In this document: piece by piece, positions 3,946 to 27,689 of the stretch
Position numbering within the stretch: position 1 is the first letter of the stretch
Layout: every line of letters begins with the position of its first letter
NCBI GenBank assembly: GCA_001643675.2
Contig: LSRY02000007.1
Span: forward strand, 1,612,001 to 1,676,000
DNA: 64,000 nt
DNA from: Monocercomonoides exilis PA203
Lineage: Eukaryota > Protista > Preaxostyla
Direction of reading: 5' to 3'
Position numbers and translations under genes: made by a program
The notes under the pieces: generated by a model
Database searches by the model: none
What the model saw: only the letters and a program-made list of their open reading frames with translations
Told to the model about the DNA's origin: nothing

Positions 3946-5101
3946 TGTGGAGTCTGCTGGAACGCTTGGGCAGTCACTCAGCCACAGACGAATCGCGTTA
4001 TCACCTCTTTCTGTGGAAGAAGATCACAAGCTGCAGGAGATTCTCCAGTCTGTTTCTCCGACATCTTCAGACACAGCAGCCACAGATAGTCAGCAGACAG
4101 ATTCCAGAACAAGCAAAGACGAATCAAGGAGCGAGTCGCATGAAGGCAAACAGGATGAGAAATGTGATGCATTTCCAACATCGGATTTGCTCTGTGACTC
4201 TTTTTCTGGCTCAGCCGCATCTTCTTCTTCGTCTGAGCCAGCTCCGTCTTTCAGCAGCAGCAACTCTTCAGAGCAAGAAGACAGCGACACAGCTCGATTG
4301 CTGAGCAATCCCGATCTGCCTTCAATCAGCAAACCAAATTCAGATCTTGGGTCTTTCAATTCGAATCTGTCTTCCTCCTCCTCTTCCTCATCTATTTCTT
4401 CCATGATATTCCCTCAGTCCATCTCTGCTGCCACGCTCTTCGAGACTGTGTCCAACCAGAATCCGCTTCTGCAGCGGCCCAGATTTCCTCATCTTGCTCC
4501 GACGCTGTCTCGTCCTCGCATCACTCCCTCGATGCTGCTGGAAGAGGACGAGGTGGTGAATGAAGACAGCTTTGGAGGGGACAGCATAGAAAGAAGGAAG
4601 GGCAGGGTCGAGCAGAAGAAGACAAGATACTTCACTTCGATGGAAGGAGCATGTTTGCAAGCAGTGGAGCAGCAAAACGCAAAGTGGATTGAAGGAATGA
4701 ACAGAGAAGAGAAATCCAGCGACCAACAACAGATGCAGCAATGCGATGAGAAAGGGAAAGAAGATGACGAAGGAGAAGATGACCATAGTTCATGTGTGGC
4801 AGATGGAAAAGATGAAATGGAGGTGATTTTGGAGCAGAATGAAGAAAATGGAGCAATTGACTTGAAGGACCAGAGCAAATCCGGGAATAATGACAATGTT
4901 GATGAAGATATCTCAGTAATTGGCCCTCGAGCCCAAGCGAGCGAGTCTCCTTTGAAGATTTGCTCACCTTCTTCTCTATCAGCAGATTGCTCCGCTGCAT
5001 CTTCGCAAAGCGAACAACTGCAGCTTTCTGGAAAGTTTAACTCCGAAAAATTCACTGAGAAAGCATTAAACCAAAAGCAAAATGTCATTTGCTCGAATTA
5101 A
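3212..5101 (+). CDS. Ser/acidic low-complexity hypothetical ORF (true start uncertain)
   Basis: 629-codon open frame ending in TAA, convergent on cathepsin B. No recognisable domain. The listed start is GTG, and the 5' third overlaps a decayed minus-strand frame. Confidence 0.35.
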   Translation: MPFIKPHSLNLEIFASPSSSSALPVVKIILFCLTHACYGFSLSGIDVNMFWLALETCHYSPMAYLQFARASSNLAFSVFSVATALRPPSLAFSSLFLLVLLLLLFASLLLLWMVDTSVFSFGKVPAHEAVAAVSADPEELAASGKVISSLEVDEKALVESIKKLVKSARVPERSGLSNKNEKAKGCMTSSSSSSSSSSVSSSASASVSASSTCSSMHMRCPSVSLCSSSQAGTNSALETSFSSAIVESAGTLGQSLSHRRIALSPLSVEEDHKLQEILQSVSPTSSDTAATDSQQTDSRTSKDESRSESHEGKQDEKCDAFPTSDLLCDSFSGSAASSSSSEPAPSFSSSNSSEQEDSDTARLLSNPDLPSISKPNSDLGSFNSNLSSSSSSSSISSMIFPQSISAATLFETVSNQNPLLQRPRFPHLAPTLSRPRITPSMLLEEDEVVNEDSFGGDSIERRKGRVEQKKTRYFTSMEGACLQAVEQQNAKWIEGMNREEKSSDQQQMQQCDEKGKEDDEGEDDHSSCVADGKDEMEVILEQNEENGAIDLKDQSKSGNNDNVDEDISVIGPRAQASESPLKICSPSSLSADCSAASSQSEQLQLSGKFNSEKFTEKALNQKQNVICSN

Positions 5102-5333
5102 ATTGTTTGTTTCATGTTATATTAATTTTTAATTTGCAAAAAATGCTGAAAAATGAAAAAAGAAAATCATCACAACTCCATTTATTCTCATTATTTTTAT
5201 CTCTAAATGTGACAAATAAAAAAAATAATAAATAAAATAAAAAGCTCATGAGAGTCGGAACTATACAAAAATCTAAGAATAAATCTTGGATCAAATAATT
5301 ACCGAAAAACAATTTCAAAAAATTGAAAAGTAT

Positions 5334-6182
5334 TTAGCATTTTGGAAGTCCAGAATAAAATATTTCATCAATGTGGCAATCGTTTGTTCCTCTTCTAATT
5401 CTGAAGAAGCCCTTCTCCCCCCATCCTGATCCCCATGAGTTCTGAAGAAGCCAGTATGGCACTCCATTTTCTGTTCCCCATCCCATCAACATAACATGAT
5501 GCCATCCTTGAGATCTTCCTGTTTTGTGTTGGTAAACGCCACTTCTATAGTTATAAAAATCTTCAAACACTTCAAAGCATGCATAAACTGGTCCATTATT
5601 TGCAACTTCGTCCATCACGGTTTTTGAGTTGAATGATCCCCATGACGAAACAAATGAGCGCACAATATTTGATCCATTTTTGCATTTTGATGGGCATGTT
5701 GGGACACGTCCTGAGCCAGAAACATATGGAATGCATTGTTCGGTCGTTATTCCTTTCTTCTGAATCCAATTCCAAACTCGATCAGCATATCCTCCATTGC
5801 AGCCCATATTGTTTGATTCACATGACACAAGATCCTGAGGAGACATTACACCTTTGGAGCACCTTCGTATTCCCATTCTGAAGCCCATCGTCTCTGATGC
5901 TGCATGAGCCCAGCAAGATCCACACGAACCCTGATTTCGAACTGGCTCTGCTTTGCCTGGCCATTTTTGTCTGCAGTCAAAGGAAGCTGGCGCATTTTCG
6001 TTTTCGGCAAAGGTCCATTCTCCCTCAAATCCGTTACCAATTTGAGAAATCATTGCTCTCATCTTCGCAGGCGTCAAAATTTCACGTGGATATTCGGTAG
6101 CAACCCAAGTCGATGAGGGGTCGTTGTTGACGATATCAACCACTGACTCAGCCAACACTGATGCAATTAGAAAATAAAGCAT
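5334..6182 (-). CDS. cathepsin B-like cysteine protease (papain family C1A), intronless
   Basis: Signal peptide, short propeptide, FDCRQKWP, QGSCGSCWAH (catalytic Cys), GCNGG, NGPV, GVYQH, GWHHVMLMGWG (catalytic His), YWLLQNSWG (catalytic Asn), GFFRIRRG. Confidence 0.96.
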   Translation of the reverse strand: MLYFLIASVLAESVVDIVNNDPSSTWVATEYPREILTPAKMRAMISQIGNGFEGEWTFAENENAPASFDCRQKWPGKAEPVRNQGSCGSCWAHAASETMGFRMGIRRCSKGVMSPQDLVSCESNNMGCNGGYADRVWNWIQKKGITTEQCIPYVSGSGRVPTCPSKCKNGSNIVRSFVSSWGSFNSKTVMDEVANNGPVYACFEVFEDFYNYRSGVYQHKTGRSQGWHHVMLMGWGTENGVPYWLLQNSWGSGWGEKGFFRIRRGTNDCHIDEIFYSGLPKC

Positions 6183-6532
6183 TTCGAAAGAATATTGATC
6201 TTAATCACCCAATATATATAACAGATGAATATTAATGATGGTCTCATTTTGATTCAGATTTCGAAAATAATAAAGAGGATGGCTTATCGGAAATATTGAT
6301 AAATTGTTGACGAGTTAAAGATGTCAACTGAAAGACTCATTTAAAAACTGTTTCTTGCTGCACTCAATCAAATAGAACGTGAAGAGAAAAAATTTTTTAT
6401 TTAAAAAAAACAATAGAACATTCCAAGCTCATTATATTATCACATGATAATGAGTTCAACATTATGTTCAAAAAAAGGATAAAATATTTTTCACACAGTG
6501 AAAAAAATTGAAAAAATTGTGTTAAACAAAAT

Positions 6533-7354
6533 ACTCCATTTATTATTCAAATTTGGTAAAACTTATTATTCGAAATTGGTCAACTAATAATTCAAAATTA
6601 ATAAACTTTTTATTCGAAATTGGTAAACTTCTTATTCGAAATTAATAAAATTGAGTATATTCTGAAAAAAAATTTTTTGAATTAAGTCTTCCATTGATTG
6701 AGTGTCGAAAAGTGATTAAAATATCGTATTCAGTCAATATTCGAAATATAGATGAGAATTTGAACCAAGATTTTTATTATTTGTGAATAAACATGAAATT
6801 TTCTGATTTTTCAGAAAAGAAATCATCATCATGGAAATATGTTAATTTTTGAGTTATTTCACCTCACATCGATAAATAATGCATTATTCAACCAAGAAAA
6901 GGAGTTTGCATCAATATTAGTTTATTCAGATAAACAATAAAAAACAAATAAAGAATTCAGAAAGTGCATTCGTGGATTTATTCAGTTCTGAAAAACATTT
7001 GCATTCAGTTTGTATCATTGATGCAAACTCCTTTTCTTGGTTGAATAATGCATTATTTATCGATGTGAGGTGAAATAACTCAAAAATTAACATATTTCTA
7101 TGATGATGATTTCTTTTCTGAAAAATCAGAAAATTTCATGTTTATTCACAAATAATAAAAATCTTGGTTCAAATTCTCATCTATATTTCGAATATTGACT
7201 GAATACGATATTTTAATCACTTTTCGACACTCAATCAATGGAAGACTTAATTCAAAAAATTTTTTTTCAGAATATACTCAATTTTATTAATTTCGAATAA
7301 GAAGTTTACCAATTTCGAATAATAAGTTAATTAAATTTGAATAATAAATAGTGT
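6533..7354. mobile_element. foldback/MITE-like element: long inverted arms, ~101-bp spacer, subterminal 22-bp tandem repeats
   Basis: 6612-6915 is the near-perfect reverse complement of 7017-7320. A ~22-bp unit (ttattattcgaaattggtaaac-like) occurs 5 times at 6540-6650 and 3 times inverted at 7282-7347. No clear TSD. Confidence 0.8.
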
Positions 7355-8309
7355 CCTGAATGAATATTATTTCGTTCCATTTGTTTTCTTAAATGAAAAT
7401 TTTCATTCAATAATTTCATTTTGTGACATGTACGTTTTTTTATTTATATTGATAAATTAGTTAGTAACTTCAAAATAATTAATATTTTGGATAAAAGAAA
7501 ATAGCTTTGATTAATTATTTAGGCAAACAAACAAAAAGATAAGCTGAAAAAGGGAATTTTCATTGAGAAAAAAGAATCAAGCAAATGGAAAGAAGAAGTT
7601 GAAGATAAATAAAACTGGGAAATTTGAACAAAGAGAAATATTTCTTTAACATTTATTATTCTCTGGATTTAGTACTCGGATATTAACAATCGAGATTTTA
7701 AGGGTATGGGTAATTCTTTTTGATTTCATATTTTTTCTATCAAAATTAACGAATAGATAATTTTTCACAAATACTTCGAAATCAATCAGATATTTTTATC
7801 AAAATCATTTATGAACTTCTCTGTCTTTCTTTAACAACATATAATAAAAAGGACAATAATTAGAAAGCAAGTGAAGCTTTTTTGATTATTATTTTTTAAA
7901 TAATTGTGAATTAGAAAAATAAACATATATTGAAAAAATATATGATTTCAGAAATAATCACCCATATAAGCTGAAGAAGGGAAGAGTTGTGAGAAGAAGA
8001 AGAAGCAAAATGAGAAAGAAAAAGTATCTTTTCAAATGATTTGTGCGAATTGGAACAGAATTATCAGAGAAAAGTTAGATGGAGAGGAAAGAAAATTCGG
8101 TATAAGTGTATCATCTGGGAGTTATCAAAATAAGAACAAACTTCATTTAAACATCTTTCAAACCGTTGTTTTGATAAAATATCAGCAAGATAGTTGTCGG
8201 AAACTCGTTTTTTTGACAAAACAGTAAGTGATGAATAAAGTTCATTTTCAAATAATTTTGGGTAATCAAATTTTTTATTTTTTTATTTTATTTTATTATT
8301 TTTTTTTTG

Positions 8310-9603
8310 TGGCTGTTCACATTTTTGATATTACAAGAACGAATGAGCCTGACGATCAATTCCACGTTGAAGATGCAACATGAAGGTATTTTTTCATGAC
8401 CATTTTGGGTGGAAGAATTATGTGGTGCATCAAGTTAAAAAGATTTGTGAAGGTTTTGAAGAAGGAGAAGTTCAATAAATGCTGGCACTGTTCAAAATAT
8501 GGAAGAAAAAATAAGTTTTCGATGGAACTGACTTCTTTCAAAATTTGATAATATCAAATTTTTTTTGAAAAGTTCCTTTTGTTTTATTTTCAAATAAAAT
8601 AATAATTTCATTTTTCAATCAAATTTCAGTTCTCTCTCATGAAACTTCACAAAAATAACAATAATAACATTTTAAAGATTTTATTTTCATTACAGGAAAA
8701 TTTGGTGAGTGGGGACAGAAATTTGATTGAAAAATGAAATTTTTATTTTATTTGAAAATTAAACTAAAAGAACTTTTCTTAAAAAATGAAGACTTATGAT
8801 CAGGGAAAACAAAGAGGATTCTTTTGTGGTGTGAAAAGGGAATTTCGATAAAGCGCATTTCAAGATTTTTAGGAATTGACAGAAAGACAATTGGATTTTG
8901 CAGGAGTGTGGTCGGGGTTGTGTGCATGAATGTGTAGAATGAGAACCAAGTCCAAATAGAAGGGGAAGGAAAGACAGTTGAGATTTATGAGGCTGTTTGG
9001 AGAAGGAGAAAATTCAAGAGGGGAAGGAGAAAAGAACAGATTTGGATTTTTGGAGGTGAAGAGAGATTGAAAGGCGGAGGAACTGGTCCAAGATTCGTGA
9101 TTATTGCACCCAAATACAGAAAAGAGACTTTTCTTCCAAACAAAATGGAAAGAATACACACTGGAACAACAAGCATATCTGACGAGTGGAAATCCTATTC
9201 CACTTTGAATCCTCACAATTGCGCGCACAAAACAATCTGCCACAAACGGCATTATGAAGATTAAGAAAGTGGAGCCTGTACCAATACAATTGAGGGATTG
9301 TGTGGTACTCTCAGAAAGTCTTTTCCCCACAATGGAGAAAGGAAATCACTGACACCTGATCATTTGGAAATGCAAATTGTGAAATCATCGAAAGATTATG
9401 AATTATCTGATATTTTGATGCACATTTCTAATTATAAACCTGTGGAACACCATGTGCCTGAACCAGAATCTGATACAAAAGATGAAGATACTGATACTTC
9501 TGGCATTGATGATGTTTTTCATGAAGAATCGAGTGACGAAAAATTGTCAGGATTTACTTCAGAGGAAGAAATAACCTCTGACTTTAAACATTTATTTTTT
9601 TAA
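8310..9603 (+). pseudogene. decayed Merlin/IS1595 (ISXO2-like) DDE transposase
   Basis: One plus frame reads GKTVEIYEAVWRRRKFKRGRRKEQIWIFGGEER...GTTSISDEWKSYSTL...HKTICH...*ESGACTNTIEGLCGTLRK. This matches the ISXO2 motifs VEIDES, RKYxRGR, WVFG, TIxSDxWxxY, HxxVNH, HTNxIExxW. The first catalytic D is Y and there is an internal TAA at 9262-9264. An upstream WHCSKxGRKISFR zinc-ribbon-like relic lies near 8480-8520. Confidence 0.85.
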
Positions 9604-10202
9604 ATTTCTTATTTTTGTTCTTTTTATTTTTTTCGAAAAAACGTTTCCGACGCTCAACAAAACACAATATAATCATAAATTACGTCATTGATCCATAAAA
9701 AAGTTGTTTTTACCCAAAATGAAACCTACCATATCATACCCATATACCTATTTTTTGACTATAGTTAGATATTTTCCAAATAATTTCATGAAAAAAAGTT
9801 TCAATGTGAATATTATTTGCCAAACAAAAATTTTTTCACTAAAAATTAAATTCTTAAAAAAAATATTTTTTTTTTTATTTTGGTAACTGCAAACGAAATA
9901 CAAAAGCAGAGAACTCATGTGCTTGTTCAAAAAATCAAAAAATTCACTTCATTTTTAAACGTGATATTAAAACTTCAATTAATTCTACAGCCAACATATA
10001 CACAAAATTAAAAAAATATATAAAAAAGGAACAAATTATCACATTGTTATATTAATCTTTACGGTTATATTTGGTTGAAAATAAAATTGAAGCAAGAGAA
10101 AATTGAAGTACAGTCAAACAAAAAATAAAAAGAAAAAATTATTTCCGTCCACGACAGAAACTTCAAAAGTGCACAGTAATCTTGCTTCTATTAATTTATC
10201 AA

Positions 10203-11873
10203 TTAAAATTGATACGAGACATCAAAAATCTTGATGTCAATTGGCTTGTATTGCCATTGCCAGAAGACGTATTCTCTATCAAGTCCCCATTTGCATCCCT
10301 TTGTGCAGGTTCTGAAAGCAACATGCCCAACAAAACGAGCAGAAAACGGTCCAGTGTGAGAATTTGCGTACATTCCCACTTTGCATTGACCCGCTGAGAT
10401 GTAAGCAGTTGGATCAAGTTTCTCATCAATGTTCGCCTCTAATCGTAATCCTCCCTTTGCAATAAGAATTTCTGTTCCAACTTCAGCAAATGCAGAGACA
10501 CGTGCATATGGCTCAAAGGCAATAGATGCAAACCATGTCTGGGCACACAACTCGTATGGTACGTTCGCATCGAACTGAACACGCACACCAACGCTGAATT
10601 TGATTGGCACAACTGATACGTGCACAACATATTTGTAAGAAAATTCCTTGTCCAGATCAGCAACGTGAATACTCTTACGGATGCATGGCATGTCTGGGAA
10701 TGGCTTTTTGTAAACAGAGTATGAGAACACTTGGACCTCAAGTGCATTTCTTTGTGCAGCTCCATTAACATAACCATACTCAACATAAGCGCTAGCTAAT
10801 TCCAGCTTTGAGTTCAAAATCCAAAGGTCGAGGTTTGCATATGCGCCAACAAGAAAGTTGCGTGTCTCTGAGTGGCATCCTGGATTTGTTCCAGCGACAA
10901 CGCTTCCTCCAACATTAATTCCAATGGACGTGTTGCCCAACCAGTAATTAAGAGCATATTTCTTGCAGAATTCAACACCATAGGGGCAATCTTCTGGAGG
11001 TGTAGGCTTCACATGTGCGAGTGCTTCAAATTGAGATGTGTACAAAGAATCAGAGAGGATATCCACCTCAACGTACTCTGATTCGTCAACTGCAGTTATG
11101 GGAACACCTCTTCTTGAGGAAACCAATTTCAAATTTGTTTTACCATCAGAAAACACAGCCAAATTTCCTGCTTCATCAGCATCTGCATCAACATTCTTCT
11201 TTGAAAATGTAACAGACATAAGTTGTGTAATTTCGTTAATAATACCGTAAGAGATAACAGTTGTATCGTGTCCATCAAGGCTTATTTTATCCTTGTTGAT
11301 ATTTGGATCGCGGAATGAAATAAAATCTTGCTCGGTGTAAGAGCTTGTAACGACACTTGAGGCACCGGAAAACTCAACATCAACATGAACGTAATGTTTG
11401 CCATCCATGTCAACAACAGTTTGAAGTTGTGCATTCTCATTTTGTGGCATTGTTGTTTGAAGAGCTGAAATAATTGCAACTTTAAGATCTACAATATCAG
11501 TTGTGTCATCTTTATGCGCTTTCACATTACTAACAACTCCGGTTTCCGAGAGCGAAAAAAGAAGGGGTCGAGAAAATACCTTGTCAAGTTCTCCTGATCT
11601 TGATTTTACTTCTACACGCTTTCCATTTTCATTATCGAAAACCTTAACATTTTTCGCAGTCATGCTCATAGAAAACGAATTACTCACGACATTTGTGCAT
11701 AAAATTGTCAGTTGCGCTTCAACGGCAAAGCCTTGAAACTTTTCTTCGCCTGCAACATTCTGTGCAGTCATTGCAACATCCGAATTAAAGTTATAAACGT
11801 ATGATGCTCCTTTTTGATATGACAATGTGGAGCAAGATACAAGCGATAAAACATTTAGAATGAAAAATAACAT
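10203..11873 (-). CDS. secreted all-beta protein with vitellogenin/large-lipid-transfer-protein N-terminal-like domain
   Basis: First ATG is at 11873 (MLFFILNVLSLVSCS signal peptide), followed by LSYQKGASYVYNFNS, RPLLFSLSETGVV and DLKVAIISALQT, which resemble the Vitellogenin_N beta-barrel. The C-terminal half is Cys-containing and beta-rich. Intronless, ends in TAA. The CDS is solid; the domain call is moderate. Confidence 0.7.
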   Translation of the reverse strand: MLFFILNVLSLVSCSTLSYQKGASYVYNFNSDVAMTAQNVAGEEKFQGFAVEAQLTILCTNVVSNSFSMSMTAKNVKVFDNENGKRVEVKSRSGELDKVFSRPLLFSLSETGVVSNVKAHKDDTTDIVDLKVAIISALQTTMPQNENAQLQTVVDMDGKHYVHVDVEFSGASSVVTSSYTEQDFISFRDPNINKDKISLDGHDTTVISYGIINEITQLMSVTFSKKNVDADADEAGNLAVFSDGKTNLKLVSSRRGVPITAVDESEYVEVDILSDSLYTSQFEALAHVKPTPPEDCPYGVEFCKKYALNYWLGNTSIGINVGGSVVAGTNPGCHSETRNFLVGAYANLDLWILNSKLELASAYVEYGYVNGAAQRNALEVQVFSYSVYKKPFPDMPCIRKSIHVADLDKEFSYKYVVHVSVVPIKFSVGVRVQFDANVPYELCAQTWFASIAFEPYARVSAFAEVGTEILIAKGGLRLEANIDEKLDPTAYISAGQCKVGMYANSHTGPFSARFVGHVAFRTCTKGCKWGLDREYVFWQWQYKPIDIKIFDVSYQF

Positions 11874-12194
11874 TTTTTCAGTAAAGATTAAGATGATCAA
11901 CCCATTTATTTTGCAACTTCAGAAAAACTCACTTAAGGGTATTCTTCAATATTGATTTACAAGAGAGTAATAATAGAATAAGCTATTATTAAAACAAAAT
12001 ATTGCAATACTTTCAAATGTAATATTCATGCACAGGAAATCAAAATATTGTAATAACACTTGTAATAAAGCTAAAGAGAACAAAAAAATTGAATGAAAGA
12101 AAGAAAAAGAAAAAAAAAAAAAAATGAACGAAAGAAGAACAAAAATTCATCACTTTACGCTCACATTTTAAATTGTTGTACAATCAACAATTTT

Positions 12195-16304: not shown

Positions 16305-17156
16305 TGATGATGAGTTGTTTCAATTTTCTTTTATGATCCAATTATATAATTGAAAATAGTGCTTTTCACAAATCTCTCATCAAAAACATTCAAATTCGAA
16401 AAAACAATATCTCAATTTATGAAATAATAACAAAATACTTAAATTTGAATTTTTTTTTGGGGAATAAAACAAGTATTAATTATTAAAGAAGATAATTGTA
16501 TTTGTCACGTCATGCAAAAATTTGTCAAAGTTGTTTTCATTTTTCATTGGAGCTGTTTTGCATGGATATGAGTTTATGGAATCAAATATGTCCAAATAAA
16601 GTTCCTCAAACTCAAAAATGATGAACAAAAAATTGGAAAAAAATTCTGAACTGATATTATTCATTTATCATTTCTCATCATTGACAATCGCTTATTTTGA
16701 ATAACAATTTATTTTTCATCAAATATGTGAAACAATTATTGAAAACGCTATATTTTTCTGCAAATATACCATTTTCTTTTCATACGAAAAATTTATTTTT
16801 TTGATTCATATATGATTAATTCCTTGTAAACAACTGTTAAAGATCAACATCAATTCATCAATAACTTTCATATATAATTTTCATTTGTTTTCTTTATTTT
16901 TTCAAGATTTTCAAATCTTTCTAAATTTTATTCATTAAATTTTGAGTTTATTAAAAAATTAAAACCCCAGTAAAAGATAAAAGAAAAAAGAATAAGCTGA
17001 AAGAACAAATTGCAATCATAATAGTCACTTTCTATTTATATTCCTTTATCAAAAAGAAACATTTTCATATATTTTAGAAATCAGAAAAAAACTGAGGATA
17101 ATCTAATAAAGGGCGCAGGAATTTTTTATTTTGAGTTTTTGTTTGCATCCACATCC

Positions 17157-20100
17157 ATGGTGAGACGCTCCACCAGCGCAAAAGCTGCGTTCAATATTGC
17201 TGCATTGCTGTTACTTTGTGTAATATGCCTTAATGCTGAGGGTAATGCCAATGCACAAATTCTGCAAAAAATGAACGAGGAGATCCGGAACTGCATGTTG
17301 AGCAATGCACACGAAAATGCCAAACGTATCAACAATTTTACTATTCAGAGGGAAACGATTGGGAGCGCAGCTGACAATTGCATCTGCTGTGTTCAAACAA
17401 GTCTCAAAATCATCAACAGCTCGTTGTGTGCGAGCCATCTCACCATGGCGCCTCTCTGTGGATGCACGCTCCTCACTTCTCACCACCGCTCATCCACCAC
17501 CATCCGCTCCACCACCTGCCAGATCCACCCCCACCACAATCACAAACACCACCCACTTTTCCTCTCTGCCCATGCCTCCCTTGCCCTCACCAACTTCTCT
17601 CTCCAAATCCTTCAACCAGCATTCTTCTCCTTCCCCCTCTTCTCCATTCCTCCAAATTCCCTCTCTTCCACTCACTCCCCAATCCCCACCTCTTTCTCTA
17701 TCTCCCATTCTTCCTTCTCCTCATTCATCTCCCTCATTCAGCCCTTCATTTTTTCTCCTTCTTCCATTTCTCCTTCTTCTTCCCTTATTCATCTCCATCT
17801 CTCACACACACTCTTCACCAACATCACCACTGCACCACAATCCACACACATCATTCCTGCCAATCACACACACTCACACAACTCATTCACCACCACCACA
17901 AACACCACCACCACAAACACAGACACAAACACAAACACACGCATTATTCCCTCTTTTTTGCATCATTCTTCTATCTCCGTCCACTCAACCATCTTCCTCC
18001 ACATTCACAACCCCATCGATGGTGCCATCCTCCCCTACCTCAATAGCCCATCCACATCTCTCTCTGCCTTCAACACATCTTTCCTCCACCTAACTCGATC
18101 TTCACCAAATGATCCTGTTGAACATATTGGAACTGAATCTCAAAGAGTGAAACTAGGAAGAGAGAGTATTTATGATCTGAACAGCTATCACTTTGAATGG
18201 TGCATATGGGAAAATTCAAGCAGTGGATCAAGTCATGGCGGAGCACTTTATATTAATTGCGTGAATGCAAATCTCACAATAACTTCTTGTTCGTTCAACA
18301 ATTGTTCAGTTACGGGTGAATATTCTGGTGGAGCGTTATGTTGTGATTATTTGTTGAAAATTGATATCTCAAAATCCAATTTCACAAATTGTTCAGCTGC
18401 ACAAGGAGGAGCTGTTTATGTTGGCTGGCCACAATCCAGTTCTGTTTGGATTATATCAAAAAATAGAATGGATAATTGCTCAATAACAAATTGGTGTGGA
18501 ACTGGTTGGAATATCGTGCTTGACAATATGACATCAAATGGTCAATTCCTGTTTTCGAAATGTGTTAGTATTGCAAATACCGGTGGTGATGCGGCTGGCG
18601 CAGTCACCTTTCATTACCCTCCACCAGTAATACCTCTTCAATATTTACTCCAAGAGTGCCAGTTCATCAACAATAAATTGATTGCTTCATTGACTTATGG
18701 AGGTGCTGGCATTCATTGCACCACAACATATGATTGGATGAATGAAGTCATATTCATCGCATTCTGTTTCTTCGATGGCAACACAGCAACAGATGGCAGA
18801 GGAAACGATGTGTTTTTCAATGGCAGCATCACCAAGTCCCCATTCAATCAGTGTGGATCAACAACAGAATCAAATAGAGTGTGGAATGCTGGAACTGCCG
18901 ATAACGTTGAATACAACAATTGGCTCCCTCTCATAACAACTTATAAAATCGTATCAAATAATGGAACAAACACCGATCTCTGCGGAATTACACAACTCAA
19001 TCCATGCGCCACAATAGAATTTGCTCTTTGTCGCGTGACAGATACACAAGATGCCTCCCTCACACTCCTCAGCTCAACATTTGTCCCCAATCAAACGCTC
19101 ACCTTCAGCGCAGCTGACACAAAAATCACAGGAAATGGAACAACTGCCACAACCATCGCTTCCAGTGGCATTCCTCAGCCAACTTCTTCATCCTCTCCCT
19201 CATCATCGACATCTTCTTCACCAGATCCATCTTCCGCTTCTGCCCTTTTCCAACAAACTCAGGGCTCACTCACAGTCTCTGCCCTCGCCATCTCCCACAA
19301 CTCCTCAAATCCCATCACCCCCATCCTCTTCCACCTCTCTGAAAACTCCCCTTACCTCATCCTCAACACAACCACCATCACTGGAACAACCTCATCTTCA
19401 TCATCAATCACCACACCCCTATTCTTCCTCACAGCTGGCTCCCTCGCCCTCAACCACACAGCAATCACCAGCCTCACCCTCAACAGCCAAAGCATCTTCC
19501 ACCTCACCTCCCTCACAGCTCCCCTCACCCTCAACTCCTCCAACATCACCGACATCACCTCCACAGCCTCCCCCACCAGCTGTGTCCTCTCCTCTGCCAC
19601 CTCCCCTGCCCTCTCCATCTCCCTCGCCAACTGCACCATCACCAACATCAACTCAGCTCCACAACACCAACAGATTGCCACCGATGGCGGGTGCATCTCA
19701 TTCGCCTCATCTGCCTCTGCCAACTCGTTTTCAGTGAGTGACACAAATTTCTCCACCTGCTCTGTGAGCGAGGATACAAGTTCTGGAGGAAGAGGCGGTG
19801 CTCTCATGATCGAGTTCAAGGATGATTCAGAAGTGTCAGAATCCTCCTTTTCCATGGCAAATGTGGTGTTTTCAGCCAACAAGGCCAGTGTCGGAAGAGA
19901 TATGTATTTTGTGTGCGAATCATTTGTCGCTTCTGTGAAAGGGCCCTTGTTCGCCTTCATGAAAAGCATCACTCAGAAAGACAACTCGATTGTTGGGCAC
20001 GATAGAACAGAGGCATTCCGTGATTGGGATGTCGATTTATTCATATTTATAGATGGTTTTTTTGATGATACAATATATGTGGATGGAACATCTGGAGTGG

Positions 20101-23100
20101 AGAAGGCGTATTGTGGGATTGAAAAGGTGCCATGCAAGAGTGTGGGCTATGGGGCAGGGCATCTGAAGAGAACACAGAATAAAAAGCAGGAAATTATTTT
20201 ATGTGCAAACTCGTCTGTGGCAGGGTGCGTGGATGTGGGAAGAGTGCTTATAAAAGCAAAAGAGAAGGAAATGATAAGAATCGAATGCCAAAGAGAACTG
20301 AGTGGGTCTGAAGAATGCATTCTGAAGACAGAATCACTGACAGAAATAGAGTTCATTGGGATTGTTGTTCCATCGAATTTTGAGAGGACAATAGCATCAG
20401 TGATCGAATCAAGCACTCAAAATGGGGAGTTGCACATGAAGAACTGCATGATGAGTGTGGTTGGAGGGAAGGAAAACACAATTGAATTTTCCTTGATCAA
20501 ATCGACAGGGAAGATGGTTGAACTGGAGTTTGTGACGATTTCAGAAGTGAAATCATCTGTCTCGCTGTTTTCATTTTCACATTCCTCAGGAAATGTGAAT
20601 GAAGGAGATACTGAACAAAAATACAAAGCGAAGCTGTTGAATTGTTCAATGGAAGGATGCAGTTTGGCAGAGCATTCATATGGTGAATCTCCATTGATGA
20701 TATCTTCTTCTGTTTTGCTTGAAAACAGCAACTTTTCAAATATCGAGAACAAGGGCAGTGGAGAAGGAGGTGTTGCAAAAGTGACTTTGCAAAGGAATGA
20801 AGAATTGGTTATTAAATCAACAAATGCATCATCTTGCTCACTTTCATCAGGCAATGGAAAAGGAGGATTCTTGTATTTGAACTGTCAAAATTGTTTGAGT
20901 GAAAAGCCATTTCTTTTTGAAAACGTTTCATTTGCAAACAACAAAGCAGCCATTGGAAAGAATATGTTCATTTTGGGAAAGGATTTCAACAGTTCTGTGA
21001 CAAATGACTCATTCAACTTCGGTTATTCCTCAATGAAAGGCGATAACAATTTGTTTGTTGGAAGTGATGATTTTCATTCAAACAAAGATTTATTCATGTT
21101 TCTGATTCCATACAGCTCAATTGAGATATTTATCTCATCGAGTGGATTTGATGTTGCGAGATGTGGAAGTGAAGAAGAACCATGCTTCACAATGTGGAAA
21201 GGGATGGAAAATATGGAAAAGGAGGTTGGAAAGAAAACAATTCAGGTTGAAGGATCGACAATTATTCGAAATTCATTCAATGTTTCCAATTATCAGATCA
21301 AAAAAAGTGTAAAGATGGGAGAAGAAGATACAAAAGCAATATTGAATTTTGAAAAGGTAGTTGGAAATCAATTGGAATATTTCATGGAAAACGATGTTCG
21401 TCTTGAATTTTTCAACATCCAACTTCAACTAACATCTGGATTTGACAACTCAGCCAAAACGATTATTTCAAACAGAGGTGGAGAATTAGTGATACGCGAA
21501 TGTTCATTCCATTCAGAGGCAGGAGTGAACAATGGATTTGATTGTGTGTTTGTGGATGTGATTGGAGGAAGTGTGAACGTGAATGATTTGTCGATGGAAT
21601 CATGCAATGTTGGAGAAAACATTTTTGTTATTAACAGCGCTGGAGTTTCTTGTCATTTTGTGAATGTTCGAGTGGAATCATTGAATGAAAGTGGTGGATG
21701 TCTTCTTCTGATCAAAGGATCTGAATTAACAACAAAGATAAATGAAGTGAGTGAGGAAATGAGTCTCAACATTGATAATTCGTCATTTTCAGGAGTGAAG
21801 AGAAGTGACAATGGATCAAGCATTTTGGAGTCAAAAAATGAGAAAAAAATAGATTTGGTTGTGAATGAGAGCAACATCACAGAAGACAAAGCAGAAACAA
21901 GTGAAAAAGGAGGGGCAATATTCTTCACATTGGGTGCATCTGGATCAATGAAGATGATTGACTCAACAATCAGTCAATGCAGCTGCACAAATGGGAAAGG
22001 AGGAGGAGTGTATTTGGCAACAAAAGAAAGAGGAGATTTGAATTTCACATTTGTGGGGATGAAGTTCAGTGCAAACACAGCAAAAGTGGGTAATGATATT
22101 TTCATTGAATGTTTCAACATCACATCTCAGATCAATGAACGACAATTTCAGTTTGATCTTCGAGAGAATCATTATTCGCGAATTAATGCAATATATGGAA
22201 GAGATGAAAGTGATTATCAGAGCGACACCGATCTGATTGATTTTGTGACGATTCATCAGGGTGACACGATCATTGTGAGCAGCGTGAATGGATCGAATGA
22301 GAGACAGTGTGGAACAAACACACTTCCTTGTTTCTCAGTTGATTATGGACTGATGCATCTGACTTCAGATTTCATAAGTCAAATGTTCATTCTTGAGGAG
22401 AGCGTGATTGATGAGGAGATTAATTTGGAGGAGGTGAGCCTGAGTTCGAAGAGCAGAGGCTTGTGTGAAGTTGAAGTTGAAACAGTGATTGAAAGAACAA
22501 GAGAGGCATTGATATCAACAGCTGGAACAGCCTCAATGCTGAGAGTTGGCTTTGTGTTTGATTCGAATTTCGCTTCCACACATGAATCACTGATATCACC
22601 AGAGGGAGGGATTCTGGAAATTATGAATTGTTCGTTCACAGAAAAACAATTGATAGAAGGAGTTAATGCAGAATTTGCAAACATTCCATTTCACATTATT
22701 AATATGGAAAAAGGAGAATTACAACTTGATGGATGCGCGATATCAAATCTTATTCTTCATGAATCTGCATTATCTCTTTCATCGCAACTTCCATCAGTTA
22801 TTGATACATTAACGTTTTGCAGTTCAACAATAAAAACTTCTCTGATAGATATTGATGAATGTGGACAATTAACAATCAAGGATTTCAATGCAGAAAATAT
22901 ATCAGTTAAAGGAAAAGAAGAATCATTGATATCTTGCCTGTCAATGAAAAAGACGATGCAGTTAGCAAATTGCACAATGGACGGAGTAAGTTCAAAGACC
23001 ACAAAAGGGAAATTGATGAAAGTGGAGGATTGCACAGATGTGAAAATGTACAGTTGCATTTTTGATGGAAGTTTAAAGGAAATAAATGAAATGAATTCAA

Positions 23101-25073
23101 ATACAGAAGAAGAGAAGTGCAGATGGGAAGGATCTCTTGTGGATGTTGTGAAGAGTTATGTGATGATGAAAGATTCAACAATCTCGAATTCACCTGATGG
23201 TGGAGTCGCAATGAGTGGAGGAAATATGATAATTGAGAAAGGAGAGTTCATTGGCAACAATCCATCCATTGAAGGATATCCATCATTGAGAAGAAACATC
23301 ATCTGTTTAGATTCAGGAACATTGAATGTGATGAGTTTGAAAGGAGGAGATGGATTGAAGGATAATACTTCTCTTTGGATGTTGAATGAAGGGTGCAGTT
23401 TTGAAGGGATTGCTTCAGAAAGAGATTCATCATTTTTTATTCCTGTATTAGAGAGTGTTGAGGCAAAAGAAGAAACAGATAGAATGAAACTGACATTCAA
23501 AGGAATGCTTCTTGTTCCATGCAATTTGTCATTCGCAGTTGTGAAGAGAAAAGGAGAAGAGAATGAGATTGAAAAATACATGTTTGATGAAAATGGATTC
23601 TTATCAGAAAGGGAAGTTGAAGGAAGTGTGGGAAAAGATCTCATCAGAAGTTGTGAAGACGAAATTGAAGTGAGCGTGTGCATTTTGTTTGGAAACTCAA
23701 ATTCTCCATCTTCGACAAACTCATTTATTTTGAAAAATGCGAGTATCACTCCACCAAAAGGAGATGAAAGAAATGTTGAAAGTGGGAAAGAAGAAAAATC
23801 ATCATGGGCATTGGTTGTGATTGTGATATTTGCAATAATGTTTCTGATTGTTCTGATTGTATCAATTATATTCATTGTTCGGTGGAGGAAGGCGAAGAAT
23901 GATGCAGAAGATCTGAGAGAGATCGTGAACGATAACATCAGAAAAGATCCGAAGGCATTTGAGATGGTGACGATGGAGATGTCACCAGAGGCGCAGTGGA
24001 GAAGAGCAGAAAGGGAGGCAGAGAAGAAGAACGAAGAAAACATGAAGAAAAGAATAATTGGAAAAGAGATGGTTCATTCAGAGTCTGAAGAGTATTTGCT
24101 GGCTGAAAGTGGATCAACTGAATATATATTGGGGAGAGATTCAGATAAGATTCCTGATTGGGCATTGGAGAAGGTTGATGAGAAAGAAGAAGAGGAAGAA
24201 ACAAGAAAGAGATCGCCTTCACCTTCCATTTCATCAACTTGTTCAACTGATTCGGATTCAACATTTGTTCGATCGGAGAGTCTGTGTCCAACCACTTCGT
24301 CCATGTCAAATCTGGTGGATGCAATGGCATGCTCATCTCCTCATGAGAAGCTGATTGTGGATCTGCGAGATTCGCTGTTCATGCTGCTTCATGGGAGGAA
24401 TGAGAAGAAGGAGATGGCGATAGGCACATTGACTGAGAGAGAGCACACAGCTGCACAGGTGTTGTTCTGGGTGGCAAATGTGGCACTCCATTCATTTGAT
24501 GAAATGGAAAATCCTCTTTCTTCCCTCACAAATTTGAGTCCTCACATTGTTCTGTTTTCGGAGCACATGGTGATCTGCATTGTGATGCATTCAGATTTGC
24601 TTTCATCTGATGATTCTGATTCATCATCCATCTCATCAACAACATTTGTGACATCTGCAAGTGATGATGAAAGTGACTCATTGCCATCATCAGCGTTTGA
24701 GGATGAAGACGACAGTTTCAAAAAAGAGTGTCTGAGGTGGAAGGCACCAGAGCTGCTGATGAACAAGAAGAGGGAAGCAACGAAGGAGTCGGTGGCATTC
24801 TCGATTGGGATGATGCTGTGGGAGTGCCTGACGCTTCATGTTCCGTTTGGGGAATATGAGGCAGAAATTGCTGGACAGAAGATTGTGAATGGGGAGCGTC
24901 CGAACATTGGGGTGGTTGAGTGCGAGTGGGGAAGAGAGTTTGTGAAGAAGTGTGTGCTGGGGGATTTGACAGAGAGACCTTCGCTGACAGATGTGAAGCG
25001 GTGGCTGATTGGACACTTTCCAGAAGAGGCAATAATTGTGACAGCAACAGATGCAATATTCACCGAAGACTGA
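17157..25073 (+). CDS. giant single-pass surface receptor: signal peptide, beta-helix (GGA/FxxN) modules, TM, C-terminal pseudokinase (copy 1)
   Basis: Intronless ~2640-aa ORF, first ATG 17157. Repeated GGA(L/I/V) and FxxN motifs; four CGxxxxPC modules; TM WALVVIVIFAIMFLIVLIVSIIFIV at ~23805-23879; kinase C-lobe motifs RWKAPEL, SIGMMLWECLT, PF, GERP, RPSL. Confidence 0.9.
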   Translation: MVRRSTSAKAAFNIAALLLLCVICLNAEGNANAQILQKMNEEIRNCMLSNAHENAKRINNFTIQRETIGSAADNCICCVQTSLKIINSSLCASHLTMAPLCGCTLLTSHHRSSTTIRSTTCQIHPHHNHKHHPLFLSAHASLALTNFSLQILQPAFFSFPLFSIPPNSLSSTHSPIPTSFSISHSSFSSFISLIQPFIFSPSSISPSSSLIHLHLSHTLFTNITTAPQSTHIIPANHTHSHNSFTTTTNTTTTNTDTNTNTRIIPSFLHHSSISVHSTIFLHIHNPIDGAILPYLNSPSTSLSAFNTSFLHLTRSSPNDPVEHIGTESQRVKLGRESIYDLNSYHFEWCIWENSSSGSSHGGALYINCVNANLTITSCSFNNCSVTGEYSGGALCCDYLLKIDISKSNFTNCSAAQGGAVYVGWPQSSSVWIISKNRMDNCSITNWCGTGWNIVLDNMTSNGQFLFSKCVSIANTGGDAAGAVTFHYPPPVIPLQYLLQECQFINNKLIASLTYGGAGIHCTTTYDWMNEVIFIAFCFFDGNTATDGRGNDVFFNGSITKSPFNQCGSTTESNRVWNAGTADNVEYNNWLPLITTYKIVSNNGTNTDLCGITQLNPCATIEFALCRVTDTQDASLTLLSSTFVPNQTLTFSAADTKITGNGTTATTIASSGIPQPTSSSSPSSSTSSSPDPSSASALFQQTQGSLTVSALAISHNSSNPITPILFHLSENSPYLILNTTTITGTTSSSSSITTPLFFLTAGSLALNHTAITSLTLNSQSIFHLTSLTAPLTLNSSNITDITSTASPTSCVLSSATSPALSISLANCTITNINSAPQHQQIATDGGCISFASSASANSFSVSDTNFSTCSVSEDTSSGGRGGALMIEFKDDSEVSESSFSMANVVFSANKASVGRDMYFVCESFVASVKGPLFAFMKSITQKDNSIVGHDRTEAFRDWDVDLFIFIDGFFDDTIYVDGTSGVEKAYCGIEKVPCKSVGYGAGHLKRTQNKKQEIILCANSSVAGCVDVGRVLIKAKEKEMIRIECQRELSGSEECILKTESLTEIEFIGIVVPSNFERTIASVIESSTQNGELHMKNCMMSVVGGKENTIEFSLIKSTGKMVELEFVTISEVKSSVSLFSFSHSSGNVNEGDTEQKYKAKLLNCSMEGCSLAEHSYGESPLMISSSVLLENSNFSNIENKGSGEGGVAKVTLQRNEELVIKSTNASSCSLSSGNGKGGFLYLNCQNCLSEKPFLFENVSFANNKAAIGKNMFILGKDFNSSVTNDSFNFGYSSMKGDNNLFVGSDDFHSNKDLFMFLIPYSSIEIFISSSGFDVARCGSEEEPCFTMWKGMENMEKEVGKKTIQVEGSTIIRNSFNVSNYQIKKSVKMGEEDTKAILNFEKVVGNQLEYFMENDVRLEFFNIQLQLTSGFDNSAKTIISNRGGELVIRECSFHSEAGVNNGFDCVFVDVIGGSVNVNDLSMESCNVGENIFVINSAGVSCHFVNVRVESLNESGGCLLLIKGSELTTKINEVSEEMSLNIDNSSFSGVKRSDNGSSILESKNEKKIDLVVNESNITEDKAETSEKGGAIFFTLGASGSMKMIDSTISQCSCTNGKGGGVYLATKERGDLNFTFVGMKFSANTAKVGNDIFIECFNITSQINERQFQFDLRENHYSRINAIYGRDESDYQSDTDLIDFVTIHQGDTIIVSSVNGSNERQCGTNTLPCFSVDYGLMHLTSDFISQMFILEESVIDEEINLEEVSLSSKSRGLCEVEVETVIERTREALISTAGTASMLRVGFVFDSNFASTHESLISPEGGILEIMNCSFTEKQLIEGVNAEFANIPFHIINMEKGELQLDGCAISNLILHESALSLSSQLPSVIDTLTFCSSTIKTSLIDIDECGQLTIKDFNAENISVKGKEESLISCLSMKKTMQLANCTMDGVSSKTTKGKLMKVEDCTDVKMYSCIFDGSLKEINEMNSNTEEEKCRWEGSLVDVVKSYVMMKDSTISNSPDGGVAMSGGNMIIEKGEFIGNNPSIEGYPSLRRNIICLDSGTLNVMSLKGGDGLKDNTSLWMLNEGCSFEGIASERDSSFFIPVLESVEAKEETDRMKLTFKGMLLVPCNLSFAVVKRKGEENEIEKYMFDENGFLSEREVEGSVGKDLIRSCEDEIEVSVCILFGNSNSPSSTNSFILKNASITPPKGDERNVESGKEEKSSWALVVIVIFAIMFLIVLIVSIIFIVRWRKAKNDAEDLREIVNDNIRKDPKAFEMVTMEMSPEAQWRRAEREAEKKNEENMKKRIIGKEMVHSESEEYLLAESGSTEYILGRDSDKIPDWALEKVDEKEEEEETRKRSPSPSISSTCSTDSDSTFVRSESLCPTTSSMSNLVDAMACSSPHEKLIVDLRDSLFMLLHGRNEKKEMAIGTLTEREHTAAQVLFWVANVALHSFDEMENPLSSLTNLSPHIVLFSEHMVICIVMHSDLLSSDDSDSSSISSTTFVTSASDDESDSLPSSAFEDEDDSFKKECLRWKAPELLMNKKREATKESVAFSIGMMLWECLTLHVPFGEYEAEIAGQKIVNGERPNIGVVECEWGREFVKKCVLGDLTERPSLTDVKRWLIGHFPEEAIIVTATDAIFTED

Positions 25074-27689
25074 ATGGGGGCAGTGCATGATGAAGAAGAG
25101 TGTGCATGAGGGGATGAAATTCAGATGAGCATGCGAATGCTTTGAACCATCTATTGGAACAATATGGTGTTGCAGAAAGCATTGTTGAAAAGAAACTGTC
25201 ACTGTGCATGGGGAAGGGGAGAGGAAAGAAAATGAAAGACCGCTGGCTATAAAAAAGAAAAGCATTACACCACCACAAGCACGTCAATTTTGATTTTATT
25301 TAAGTTATTGTTGTTGTAATTCACACTTTTGTTTGTGTTTTTGTCACCTGTCTGAAGCCTGGAAGCCATTTCGAGTTTTCACATCGCCTCTTCATTTTGT
25401 TGATGCTTTTGTGATGCTGAGGGTTTCGAATGCCGATCAATCATGAGGAGTCTTCTTGCTAATGAGATGTTCTTTTGATGATTATATTGGCTGTTTGAAT
25501 CCTTTTGTCACTTTTTGCATCGATATTTGCGATTTCACTTATCTTTTTGTTTGCTTGATTGATTGCTTCTTTCTTTCTTCACTGTTTTTGCGTTTAATAT
25601 TTTGTCACATAACAACTGTGTTTTGAGATATGCTTCTTCAAATGTTTTGACAAATTATTTCTCTCGCTCACTTTTTCTTTTTCGAATGGTTGAATTGTTC
25701 GTGTTTTTTTGTTGATTGTTTTGTTATATTTATATATTTATCAATTTTTCTGATTTTAATGTGTGTAACTCATTTGTTGATGTGCCTCACACATTGATTT
25801 TTCACAACACTTTTTATAGTCAGCAATGGCCGCTTCATTTTCAGAAGGAAAAGCGATCATTGAAGCAGATAAAACACGACGAACGTGCTTTTTCAATGCT
25901 TGAAGAGGGTTCTACTTTTTTTTCTATCTGAACATCTCGGATGATTGTTGTTGAAAGAAAAAAATTAAGATGAAATGTTTGAATATCTTTTCAATGCGGA
26001 AACCATCGTTGTGTTTTGAAATAATTCAATTATCAATAACTTTATGGAATCAACTGGGTCTCTCTTTTGTTCACAAGCATTTTAATTTTAAATTTTTTCA
26101 TTTTTCATTGACTTTGAAATCATCTTTTTTAATCATTTTTTACGCATCATAAATTCTTTCTTTCTTTTATTTTCTTTCAATGCTTTCAACAATCTTGCCA
26201 ATTCCATCATGCTTCATATTTTCTTCATTTGTTTTGTGGAATTAATCTCTCGTTCAAAGAAATATTCTATTTTTTTTGAATTTTTATCGATTCATAAGAA
26301 ACGAATATTTGTAATTGTCAAACTTCATTCTCCTCAAAAAACATCCTCATTTTTAAAAAGATTCATATTTTTATAAAAACGCTGTGAGACAGGTTTGCTC
26401 CGAGATAATGAGTATTTTTCACGATTTGTGGGTGGTTTAAGTGAGAACTTCGCCCTCCCAGATATGACGAGGAAAAAGTGCGAGATGAAAATATTGACAA
26501 AAACATTTGAACTATTAAAAAGTGTTTTATGCATTGTCAGCTTCACTTCGCCACCGACTTCGCCTTTTTGCCTTGGTCGCGAAGACCAGACGGCAGGGGA
26601 CATTGCCCCTCGGAGCTCTCTCCTGCAGGCCGTGCAGGGATCCGGTGAGGCGAATATAATCAAGGAGTAGAAAGAAAAACCACTCTCGCTTCCGAGAGGC
26701 GTGGAAAAGAAAACTGCTTGTGCAGCGCTCTGCCTCCCGCTCTTTTGCTGCATCAGCAGGTTAACATCAATCATCACACACTGCATAATTAATAATTAAT
26801 TCTTCTCTGAAAAAAAAACAAAAATAATCTTGTAAAGGAGAAGGATCATTCTTGAACTTTTTATTCGTTTCCATGTTTCTCCAAAAAGGTTCTCGGTGCA
26901 CATGAATATCTTCGGGCTGTTGATCTTTTTCCATCTCCTCTGCTTTCTCGCCCTTTATCCCGTCATCTTCCTAATCTGTTTCTCTCTCTTCCGCACACAG
27001 CCGCTCTGAGTCTCTCCATCCGCGTTCGTATTATTTCGAAGCAAATCCTGTCTCACTGCGTTCTATCAATTCGCAATAAAGCGAATCTATGAACTCAAGG
27101 AGCAGGTTTGCTCCTCGATAATGAGTCTTGAAAGCACTTTTCCATATATATTTATTTTGATTGAGTTGAATTTTATTTATTTATTTGTTATGATCTTAAA
27201 CCCTTCTGCCTAGCACATCGACGTGCGGAGGATGAGTTGAGAGCGTGCGGGTGAAGTATGCGGCACCTGGCTCTACTCCTTTTCTTTCTCTGCGTGCTTC
27301 TGAGACATTCATTTCCGGGAACTCGATTCTGATAAGTTCTTTATCATTTGTCCTGAACGACTCACTCCACGCTTCCTTCTGTCTATGAACATCTTACTCT
27401 GTGGTGCTGTGTGTTTGCTTCCAGTCAGCTCGCAAGCGCTGCTGGGTATTATGAAGTGTGTTTTCCAACGCTAGTGTGGTCGGGATTAGGAGTTCAATGA
27501 CAAAGCAATTTCTCCTTGCTTTCTCTCTTCTCAAAGCTTAAAGTCTCATTTCTTTGACCGCTTTCTCTTTTCTCATATCTTCTTCTCACCCAGCTTCCGA
27601 TATATTTTCAGTGCATTCTTTCATTAACGATTCCGCTTGATCGATTCTCATATTATTCCTTTCTCTACACATATCCAACTTTTCTTCTT

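Follow-up and report, generated by a model that had tools for sequence, protein, structure and literature searches.

A variable cassette framed by two nearly G-free coding blocks in a family of giant receptor-like genes of Monocercomonoides exilis

Two giant genes and their head module

We analysed a window of 64,000 nucleotides (nt) from the genome of Monocercomonoides exilis PA203 (C69:1,612,001-1,676,000; positions without a contig name are those of the window) and searched the 82.3-Mb, 101-contig assembly for related sequences. The window carries two paralogous genes, A and B, each a single open frame of ~2,645 codons (17139-25073 and 49421-57364). Both encode a signal peptide, a head module, a long ectodomain, one transmembrane helix and a kinase-like tail. 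The two genes lie in the two copies of a duplicated 9.5-kb segment (16865-26372 and 49144-58652) with a nucleotide identity of 88%. The subject of this study is the head module, in which a variable cassette sits between two G-poor blocks within the coding sequence. Its parts are the following.

17157-25073, + strand: gene A, a type-I membrane protein of ~2,638 amino acids in one open frame
17460-18090, + strand: G-poor block 1 of gene A, coding, C 0.46 and G 0.04, rich in Ser, Thr, His, Leu, Ile, Pro and Phe
18091-19050, + strand: variable cassette of gene A, a predicted right-handed parallel β-helix domain of ordinary base composition
19051-19740, + strand: G-poor block 2 of gene A, coding, C 0.445 and G 0.097, with β-strand-like periodicity
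49439-57364, + strand: gene B, paralog of A, inside the duplicated 9.5-kb segment
49745-50380, + strand: G-poor block 1 of gene B, by base composition
50381-51330, + strand: cassette of gene B, whose 3' third has a recent tract in common with the gene at C69:1,577,603
51331-52040, + strand: G-poor block 2 of gene B, by base composition

The variable region spans ~1.1 kb in both paralogs. Amino acid identity between A and B, measured in 50-codon windows, is 50-79% over ~18036-19083 and 82-96% in the N-terminus, the blocks and the next ~250 codons; parts of the distal backbone are lower, at 68-76%. At third codon positions the two genes have an identity of 0.34-0.64 within the cassette and mostly 0.78-0.96 in the adjoining parts. 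Base composition changes along the module as well. The four blocks have G fractions of 0.036-0.099 and C fractions of 0.435-0.464, compared with 0.20 and 0.19 in the cassette. Only 4 G are found in the 300 nt of 17641-17940, and likewise 4 in the equivalent stretch of gene B, which is below the 0.5th percentile (6 G) of the window's 300-nt stretches. At four-fold degenerate Ser, Pro, Thr and Leu sites, the blocks have C at 0.51-0.53 and G at 0.01-0.03, against 0.07-0.09 and 0.22 in the remaining open reading frame (ORF). Leu is encoded by CTC at 16 of 21 codons in block 1 and 22 of 24 in block 2, and at 5 of 129 elsewhere in the ORF. Since four-fold synonymous sites carry the bias, it lies at the DNA level. 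The original prediction on this window had described a cassette far more divergent than its flanks, the count of 4 G, a C bias reaching synonymous sites and the same layout in a second gene. Our measurements bear out each of these points, and the count is exact.

Five further patches with a strong excess of C over G, 350-600 nt long, are present in the window, so the skew is not unique to the cassette flanks; the four head blocks are the longest and the most C-rich. The backbone of gene A (19741-25073) has the opposite bias (G 0.25, C 0.14, GC skew up to +0.5), so that within its single ORF the skew changes sign twice, each time by more than 1.2 units. Elsewhere in the window, an ORF of 448 amino acids (59953-61299, + strand) with no Pfam match contains a perfect Ser/Pro/Ala-rich tandem repeat at 60640-60960, in which third positions are nearly G-free (G 0.02) and A is preferred over C. 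M. exilis may generally avoid G in Ser/Pro-rich coding DNA of low complexity.

The blocks are coding, because indels in them keep the frame (multiples of three in 46 of 54 among 11 full-length genes) and contigs from RNA libraries cross the cassette-block 2 junction unspliced. All three of their sense frames are nearly without stops. RNA-library unitigs match gene A's own cassette and its block 2 junction, and none lies upstream of the gene. Several other accounts of the blocks were considered and rejected. Introns are ruled out by the kept frame and by the lack of splice joints in the RNA-library contigs. A tandem-repeat origin is ruled out as well, with short micro-repeats only. Block 2 is not a recoded copy of the backbone repeats by BLASTP (E=0.09, not significant), and its comparison with the cassette found no similarity. 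The blocks are rich in Ser and Thr, as a mucin-like Ser/Thr/Pro linker would be, but they lack tandem repeats, form the most conserved part of the gene and, in block 2, have strand-like periodicity.

Separate histories of cassette, blocks and backbone

The divergence of the cassette extends to a five-gene subfamily that consists of A, B and three neighbours on the same contig (L032-L034). Third-position identity within the subfamily is 0.70-1.0 (mostly at least 0.85) over codons 1-235 and 0.65-0.97 (mostly at least 0.80) over codons 694-870. Over most of codons ~250-690 it is 0.31-0.7 in every pair, barring one tract in B, C and D. By the Nei-Gojobori method, the cassette has a synonymous divergence (dS) of 0.54-1.29, compared with 0.09-0.21 for the blocks and 0.15-0.35 for the downstream backbone; the ratio of non-synonymous to synonymous divergence (dN/dS) in the cassette is 0.22-0.33.

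Genome-wide rankings and trees both separate the cassette from the rest of the gene. In the assembly, gene B has the backbone nearest to that of gene A (87%), yet its cassette ranks ~115th of 117 scored matches (63% amino acid identity). The best match to the gene A cassette is a truncated copy on another contig (77% amino acid, 81% nucleotide identity). Among the 11 full-length genes, cassette identity and backbone identity are uncorrelated (Spearman 0.03, 55 pairs). Maximum-likelihood trees of the backbone and of the N-terminus with block 1 recover the subfamily clade, and the approximately unbiased (AU) test rejects that clade for the cassette (p=0.0027). The gene A cassette groups with cassettes of other contigs, with a split support of 100/100. 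The cassette's motif pattern WCGTGW has 260 matches in the genome and 0 in the control.

Structure prediction assigns the cassette to the right-handed parallel β-helix fold. The AlphaFold2 (AF2) model of the 621-residue head has a mean predicted local distance difference test (pLDDT) score of 50; the cassette part alone is usable, and block 2 is of low confidence. The pLDDT is 74-88 over model residues ~70-200, most of the N-terminal half of the cassette, and 55-86 from there to ~260. VIA-align gave Z scores of 12-15.7 to β-helix proteins, for example 7o0y_A (Z 13.5, root mean square deviation 2.3 Å over 171 residues), and nearly all of the top 50 structure matches (Z 10-15.7) are β-helix proteins, among them tailspikes, lyases, glycosidases and adhesins.

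No other DNA of the family is as conserved as the blocks. Block 2 has a nucleotide identity of 0.88-0.95 in all 55 pairs of full-length genes, even where the backbones are ~40% identical. By class of relatedness, the proportion of synonymous differences (pS) is 0.15, 0.16 and 0.16 in block 2, 0.51, 0.55 and 0.50 in the cassette, and 0.18, 0.48 and 0.53 in the backbone. Codon bias is ruled out as the source of the low pS of block 2: when synonymous codons were redrawn under each region's own codon usage, pS saturated at 0.48 in block 2 (observed 0.16) and at 0.80 in the cassette. The ratio of non-synonymous to synonymous differences (pN/pS) in block 2 is an ordinary 0.43-0.50, and its tree is star-like, with the backbone clade rejected by the AU test (p=0.003). 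This ordinary ratio and the star-like, incongruent tree argue for recent shared ancestry of block 2 by exchange, not for protein constraint alone. A 38-nt core of block 2 has 217 genome matches with at most 3 mismatches and 0 in the control; the 100 matches listed are all perfect and lie on many contigs. The depth of DNA unitigs at 19461-19854 is roughly 100-150 times that of unique parts. Block 1 is homogenised less completely across the family: it has two sequence types, with a pS of 0.09 in the subfamily and 0.17-0.36 between groups. Between two backbone types, identity climbs at ~17373 on the left side and drops from 0.87 to 0.36 across 19674-19794, right where block 2 ends. The shared head module is therefore delimited by the outer edges of the G-poor blocks.

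Cassettes are mosaic. The pairwise homoplasy index (PHI) test on 31 distinct cassettes gave z=-22, a value that 0 of 1000 permutations reached. The cassettes of B and of gene C (C69:1,577,603) have 395 nt in common at 96.5% identity, against 68% outside the tract, and the archive copies L012 and L014 have 823 nt in common at 100%, against 78% outside. Sharp tracts are 340-820 nt long. Along each cassette the best-matching copy switches, alternating between full-length and truncated copies. Mosaicism is also seen in the backbone, for example at codons 994-1034, where A equals B and C, D and E equal one another. Two-change-point fits to ten subfamily pairs placed the left boundary at 17888-18152 (6 of 10 at 17888-18032) and the right one at 18728-19214 (4 of 10 at 19118-19157 and 4 of 10 at 19214). 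Three change-points are inside the cassette; most lie in the 170-250 nt of the blocks next to it. The segments of the blocks that bear on these boundaries and on copy counts are as follows.

17950-18090, + strand: left arm, the 3' end of block 1, which travels with the cassette and is present in cassette-only copies
19051-19136, + strand: right arm, ~85 nt at the start of block 2, reaching the ITGN boundary at which cassette-only copies end
19422-19459, + strand: 38-nt core of block 2 that served for counting copies, with 217 genome matches

Over 17980-18100 the majority base in the left arm has a frequency of 0.86-0.93 (35 copies); its pS is 0.30-0.41 in all classes and its pN/pS ~0.2. Just past the ITGN boundary, a Ser/Phe-rich insertion of 0 to ~20 codons is found at 19155-19200 (codons ~673-690) and at the equivalent sites of paralogs. 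This site is an indel hotspot at the right junction, where cassette-only copies stop.

Cassette-only copies and the wider family

Cassettes also occur without the rest of the gene. Our sample from the genome comprised 31 short loci and three 5-kb genes. Dozens of cassette-only copies lie mainly in ~1 Mb of another contig (C25:1.48-2.51 Mb), arranged in tandem and in large palindromes. They run from amino acid ~266-301 to 666 (the 3' end is at 666 in 12 of 16 loci and at 662-665 in the rest), and of the blocks they retain the innermost ~100-250 nt (block 1) and ~85 nt (block 2); few carry the block 2 core. Their frames are open, almost all without an internal stop. In the cassette tree, cassette-only and full-length copies are intermingled (9 state changes among 11 full-length and 15 cassette-only copies), and all comparisons between and within the two classes have similar pS and a pN/pS of 0.38-0.40.

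Nearly every cassette-only copy is followed by a conserved non-gene tail of ~250-400 nt (L002, L006, L008 and others). The opposite strand of this tail resembles Glu/Lys-rich coding fragments in which no long ORF survives; the tail has no match in the window and no consistent antisense ORF. One palindrome that holds cassette-only copies, in L031 (C25:1,580,001-1,590,000), has arms at 3215-6272 and 6954-10000 of that locus that are 99.3% identical, with a spacer of ~680 nt. The small contig C98 duplicates this palindrome region exactly and may be an assembly duplicate.

At least ~85 intact ORFs of 2,500-3,100 amino acids with a head module are present in the genome and, with partial genes included, the family numbers at least ~200. 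It is the known tyrosine-kinase-like (TKL) expansion of M. exilis. One paper describes tyrosine kinases as the largest family of the genome, with 332 predicted members of which 320 are TKL (PMC6759080), and another reports that TKL genes overlap 'unclassified repeats' (PMC8767320). A term search of PMC6759080 and PMC8767320 found no mention of the ectodomain, the cassette, the G-poor blocks, truncated copies or gene conversion, and a literature search on gene conversion in Monocercomonoides found nothing relevant. The paralogs are annotated as uncharacterised MONOS_ proteins, most with PF07714, and a few as 'putative protein tyrosine and serine/threonine kinase'. The parts of gene A downstream of the head module are the following.

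19741-23800, + strand: backbone ectodomain, with an excess of G over C, which tracks the gene genealogy and is mosaic among close paralogs
23805-23882, + strand: transmembrane helix, from the translation, within a stretch identical in A and B
24732-24995, + strand: C-lobe of the kinase-like domain, matching positions 161-257 of the Pfam profile PF00069

Gene A scores 23.2 bits against PF00069, under the cutoff of 31.7, and the C-lobe alone is covered. HRD, DFG and VAIK motifs are absent from gene A, and of the kinase motifs checked APE alone is present. Judged from its sequence, the tail is probably a pseudokinase. The Pfam search gave no match in the ectodomain of gene A.

The identity between A and B is 1.00 in windows starting at 23730-23805. 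The stretch that spans the transmembrane helix (23730-23955 in A, ~56010-56240 in B) is 100% identical between the two genes, with neighbouring windows at 82-90%, which suggests a short conversion event in the backbone that is recent. Between A and B, a fragment on the opposite strand (37784-38053, - strand) is 81% identical to gene A at 21898-22171 and is probably a decayed family member; it adjoins an ORF of 201 amino acids that is β-helix-like (37101-37706, - strand). Two neighbours in the window appear single-copy, a papain-family cysteine protease (5334-6182, - strand; PF00112, 1e-59) and a gene with a lipoprotein N-terminal domain (10203-11900, - strand; PF01347, 8e-9). Both would be useful synteny anchors.

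Gene conversion as the probable explanation, its alternatives and known systems

We propose that the locus contains the N-terminal head module of a giant receptor-like surface protein, in which gene conversion has uncoupled the frame, the cassette and the backbone, and we consider this the probable explanation. The two almost G-free coding blocks form a conserved frame around a β-helix cassette of ~1.1 kb, and homologous recombination among family members would have uncoupled these parts. The backbone and the signal-peptide end retain the genealogy of the genes. Near-identity across the whole family is kept up in block 2 and, to a lesser degree, in block 1. The cassettes would make up one deeply diverged pool, common to complete genes and to the truncated cassette-only copies, in which shuffling affects both entire cassettes and patches of 100-800 nt. 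As long and highly similar homology tracts, the blocks would be the places where exchange boundaries fall, and they may be used as recombination arms. Conversion among family members may serve to diversify the receptor tips. The cassette of A or B was presumably replaced after the 9.5-kb duplication: the non-coding 1.3 kb 3' of the stop codon is 89.8% identical between A and B, which favours one duplication followed by cassette replacement in one of the two genes.

The original prediction had cast the blocks, G-rich on the template strand, as recombination arms for swapping the cassette. It had staked this idea on cassette and flank trees that disagree and on a synonymous divergence in the cassette that is not that of the flanks, and both were found. 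The arms agree with the separate histories, the mosaics and the boundaries at the inner edges of the blocks; the part given to G-richness is not supported, as discussed below.

Several observations weigh against the proposed exchange of cassettes. No donor of the gene A cassette was found in the assembly at more than 81% over its whole length, or at more than 80, 85 and 87% by thirds, so its replacement must be old, or the donor was lost or overwritten. For one archive copy, too, the assembly contains no recent donor above 81-87% beyond its palindrome twins and the duplicate contig C98. Contigs from sequencing runs of 2016 and 2022 (one sample) carry the same cassette-block 2 junction of gene A, and there is thus no sign of rapid turnover at the bulk level, at which rare variants are invisible in contigs. 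The cassettes of B, C, D and E, four of the five in the subfamily, still group in one clade, with long branches, indicating that the vertical signal is not erased. Conversion tracts are present in the G-rich backbone as well, so the blocks are not required for recombination. Finally, the sample is partly biased, since its six distant full-length genes come from among the best cassette matches to A; the genome-wide ranked lists are free of this selection.

Some of these points also fit another history. The genes could be old duplicates whose backbones and blocks were repeatedly converted and whose cassettes were skipped, with nothing swapped in, either because diverged cassettes do not form heteroduplex or because converted cassettes are selected against. 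Such homogenisation of the flanks yields the same pattern as cassette import, which also counts against our proposal. It would account for the missing near-identical donor and for the long-branched clade of B, C, D and E. Homogenisation is in fact active: backbone tracts of the neighbours reach 97-100% third-position identity, and block 2 is homogenised across the whole family. However, the ~90% similarity of A and B continues ~1.3 kb into downstream non-coding DNA, as expected from one segmental duplication, and the grouping of the gene A cassette with those of other contigs has full support. Moreover, the tract common to B and C and the patches common to full-length and cassette-only copies show that cassettes themselves are converted. 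We therefore regard homogenisation of the flanks without cassette exchange as rather unlikely.

The blocks might instead be conserved for a function at the DNA or RNA level that has nothing to do with recombination, such as an unstructured C-rich mRNA segment that a poly(C)-binding factor recognises, or a signal for translation or secretion, with the cassette pattern being incidental. In block 2, pN and pS are both low, at the ratio given above, as if the nucleotides were constrained, and the sharply non-standard codon choice and the nearly stop-free sense frames point the same way. Constraint, however, predicts a block 2 tree that is shorter but congruent with the backbone. The AU test rejects this congruence, and the block 2 tree places genes whose backbones are 40% identical in the midst of the others. 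As a replacement for conversion this explanation is very unlikely; a function of this kind can co-exist with conversion.

The composition of the blocks raises the further possibility that their G-rich template strand forms G-quadruplexes (G4) or R-loops that initiate programmed exchange, as at pilE or the immunoglobulin (Ig) switch regions. GC skew reaches -0.96 in the blocks, and each block has 17-31 windows with a G4Hunter score of -1.5 or below, compared with none in the cassette. The exchange boundaries lie in G-poor DNA, and the arms kept by cassette-only copies are G-poor too. But the motifs themselves are not enriched. On the template strand, the four blocks contain 0, 0, 0 and 1 three-tetrad motifs, compared with 1.0-1.6 in shuffled sequences, and 9-14 two-tetrad motifs per block, compared with ~11. 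The sole canonical G4 motif of the four blocks is at 51888-51908, on the template strand of block 2 of gene B, and C runs in the blocks are mostly 1-2 nt long. With G at 0.04-0.10 and C at 0.44-0.46 on the coding strand, it is the template strand that is rich in G. Sense transcription therefore yields C-rich RNA, whereas the transcripts of switch regions are G-rich. Other G-poor patches of the window are unrelated to cassettes, and the G-rich parts of the genes have conversion tracts too. A G4 or R-loop mechanism, and with it the class-switch-like role that the original prediction gave to composition, is thus highly improbable. On present evidence, extreme strand composition has no role in recombination. 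Selection alone, diversifying on the ligand-binding tip and purifying on the linkers, would suit a cassette modelled as a surface-exposed β-helix, but is effectively excluded by a cassette dS several-fold above that of the flanks with an ordinary dN/dS, by the incongruent trees, by the significant PHI test and by the sharp tract edges.

A more far-reaching version of conversion among family members would make the G-free frames cis-acting elements of a dedicated exchange system, in which non-B DNA or a sequence-specific factor directs copying from the ~1-Mb C25 archive into expressed receptor genes. We regard it as decidedly unlikely. If true, it would amount to programmed receptor or antigen variation with a new type of initiator in a mitochondrion-less gut commensal.

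Conversion between variable cassettes in conserved frames is well known from other organisms. The msp2/p44 'functional pseudogenes' of Anaplasma are truncated in-frame donors with a central variable region and short conserved 5' and 3' stubs; segmental gene conversion produces mosaics at the single expression site of this bacterium. The truncated in-frame copies of M. exilis, with their conserved stubs, and its mosaics are similar, but in M. exilis at least ~200 complete or partial genes each carry a cassette. Borrelia vlsE/vls and Neisseria pilE/pilS combine a conserved frame, a variable cassette and a promoterless in-frame cassette array, and strand-biased G/C content or a G4 element has been implicated in them. 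M. exilis likewise has a conserved frame around a variable cassette and an in-frame cassette array. It differs in being a eukaryote, in having no enrichment of canonical G4 and the G-rich strand as template, and in an archive of ~1 Mb that is partly palindromic and whose copies lack most of block 2.

Among eukaryotes, the VSG arrays of Trypanosoma brucei and the MSG genes of Pneumocystis, with their conserved junction element, use junction homology for exchange and build mosaics from incomplete copies; both belong to parasites with monoallelic telomeric expression. The M. exilis family shares with them a surface location, conserved junctions, mosaic genes and an archive of incomplete copies. 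However, M. exilis is a gut commensal, its proteins are receptor-like with a transmembrane helix and a kinase-like tail, and its junctions are coding, G-free and internal to the ORF. Ig class-switch regions, which are repetitive and intronic, have a G-rich non-template strand and need AID, resemble the blocks in their kilobase-scale strand asymmetry of G and C beside exchanged segments. The M. exilis blocks, in contrast, are unique-sequence, coding and C-rich on the non-template strand.

Taken together, M. exilis has the shared conserved bounds, the in-frame incomplete archive and the segmental-conversion mosaics of donor-cassette systems; instead of one or a few expression sites with the rest silent, it has at least ~85 intact module-bearing ORFs. 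The family is a tractable system for studying how gene conversion can homogenise one part of a multigene family while the part beside it stays diverse, and it provides a concrete test of extreme local strand composition in recombination. It may also explain in part why about a third of the M. exilis genome is 'unclassified repeat'. Most known examples of a variable cassette in a conserved frame come from pathogens that have a single expression site. In this commensal oxymonad the same principle seems to operate in hundreds of complete receptor-like genes, and the frame is part of the coding sequence.

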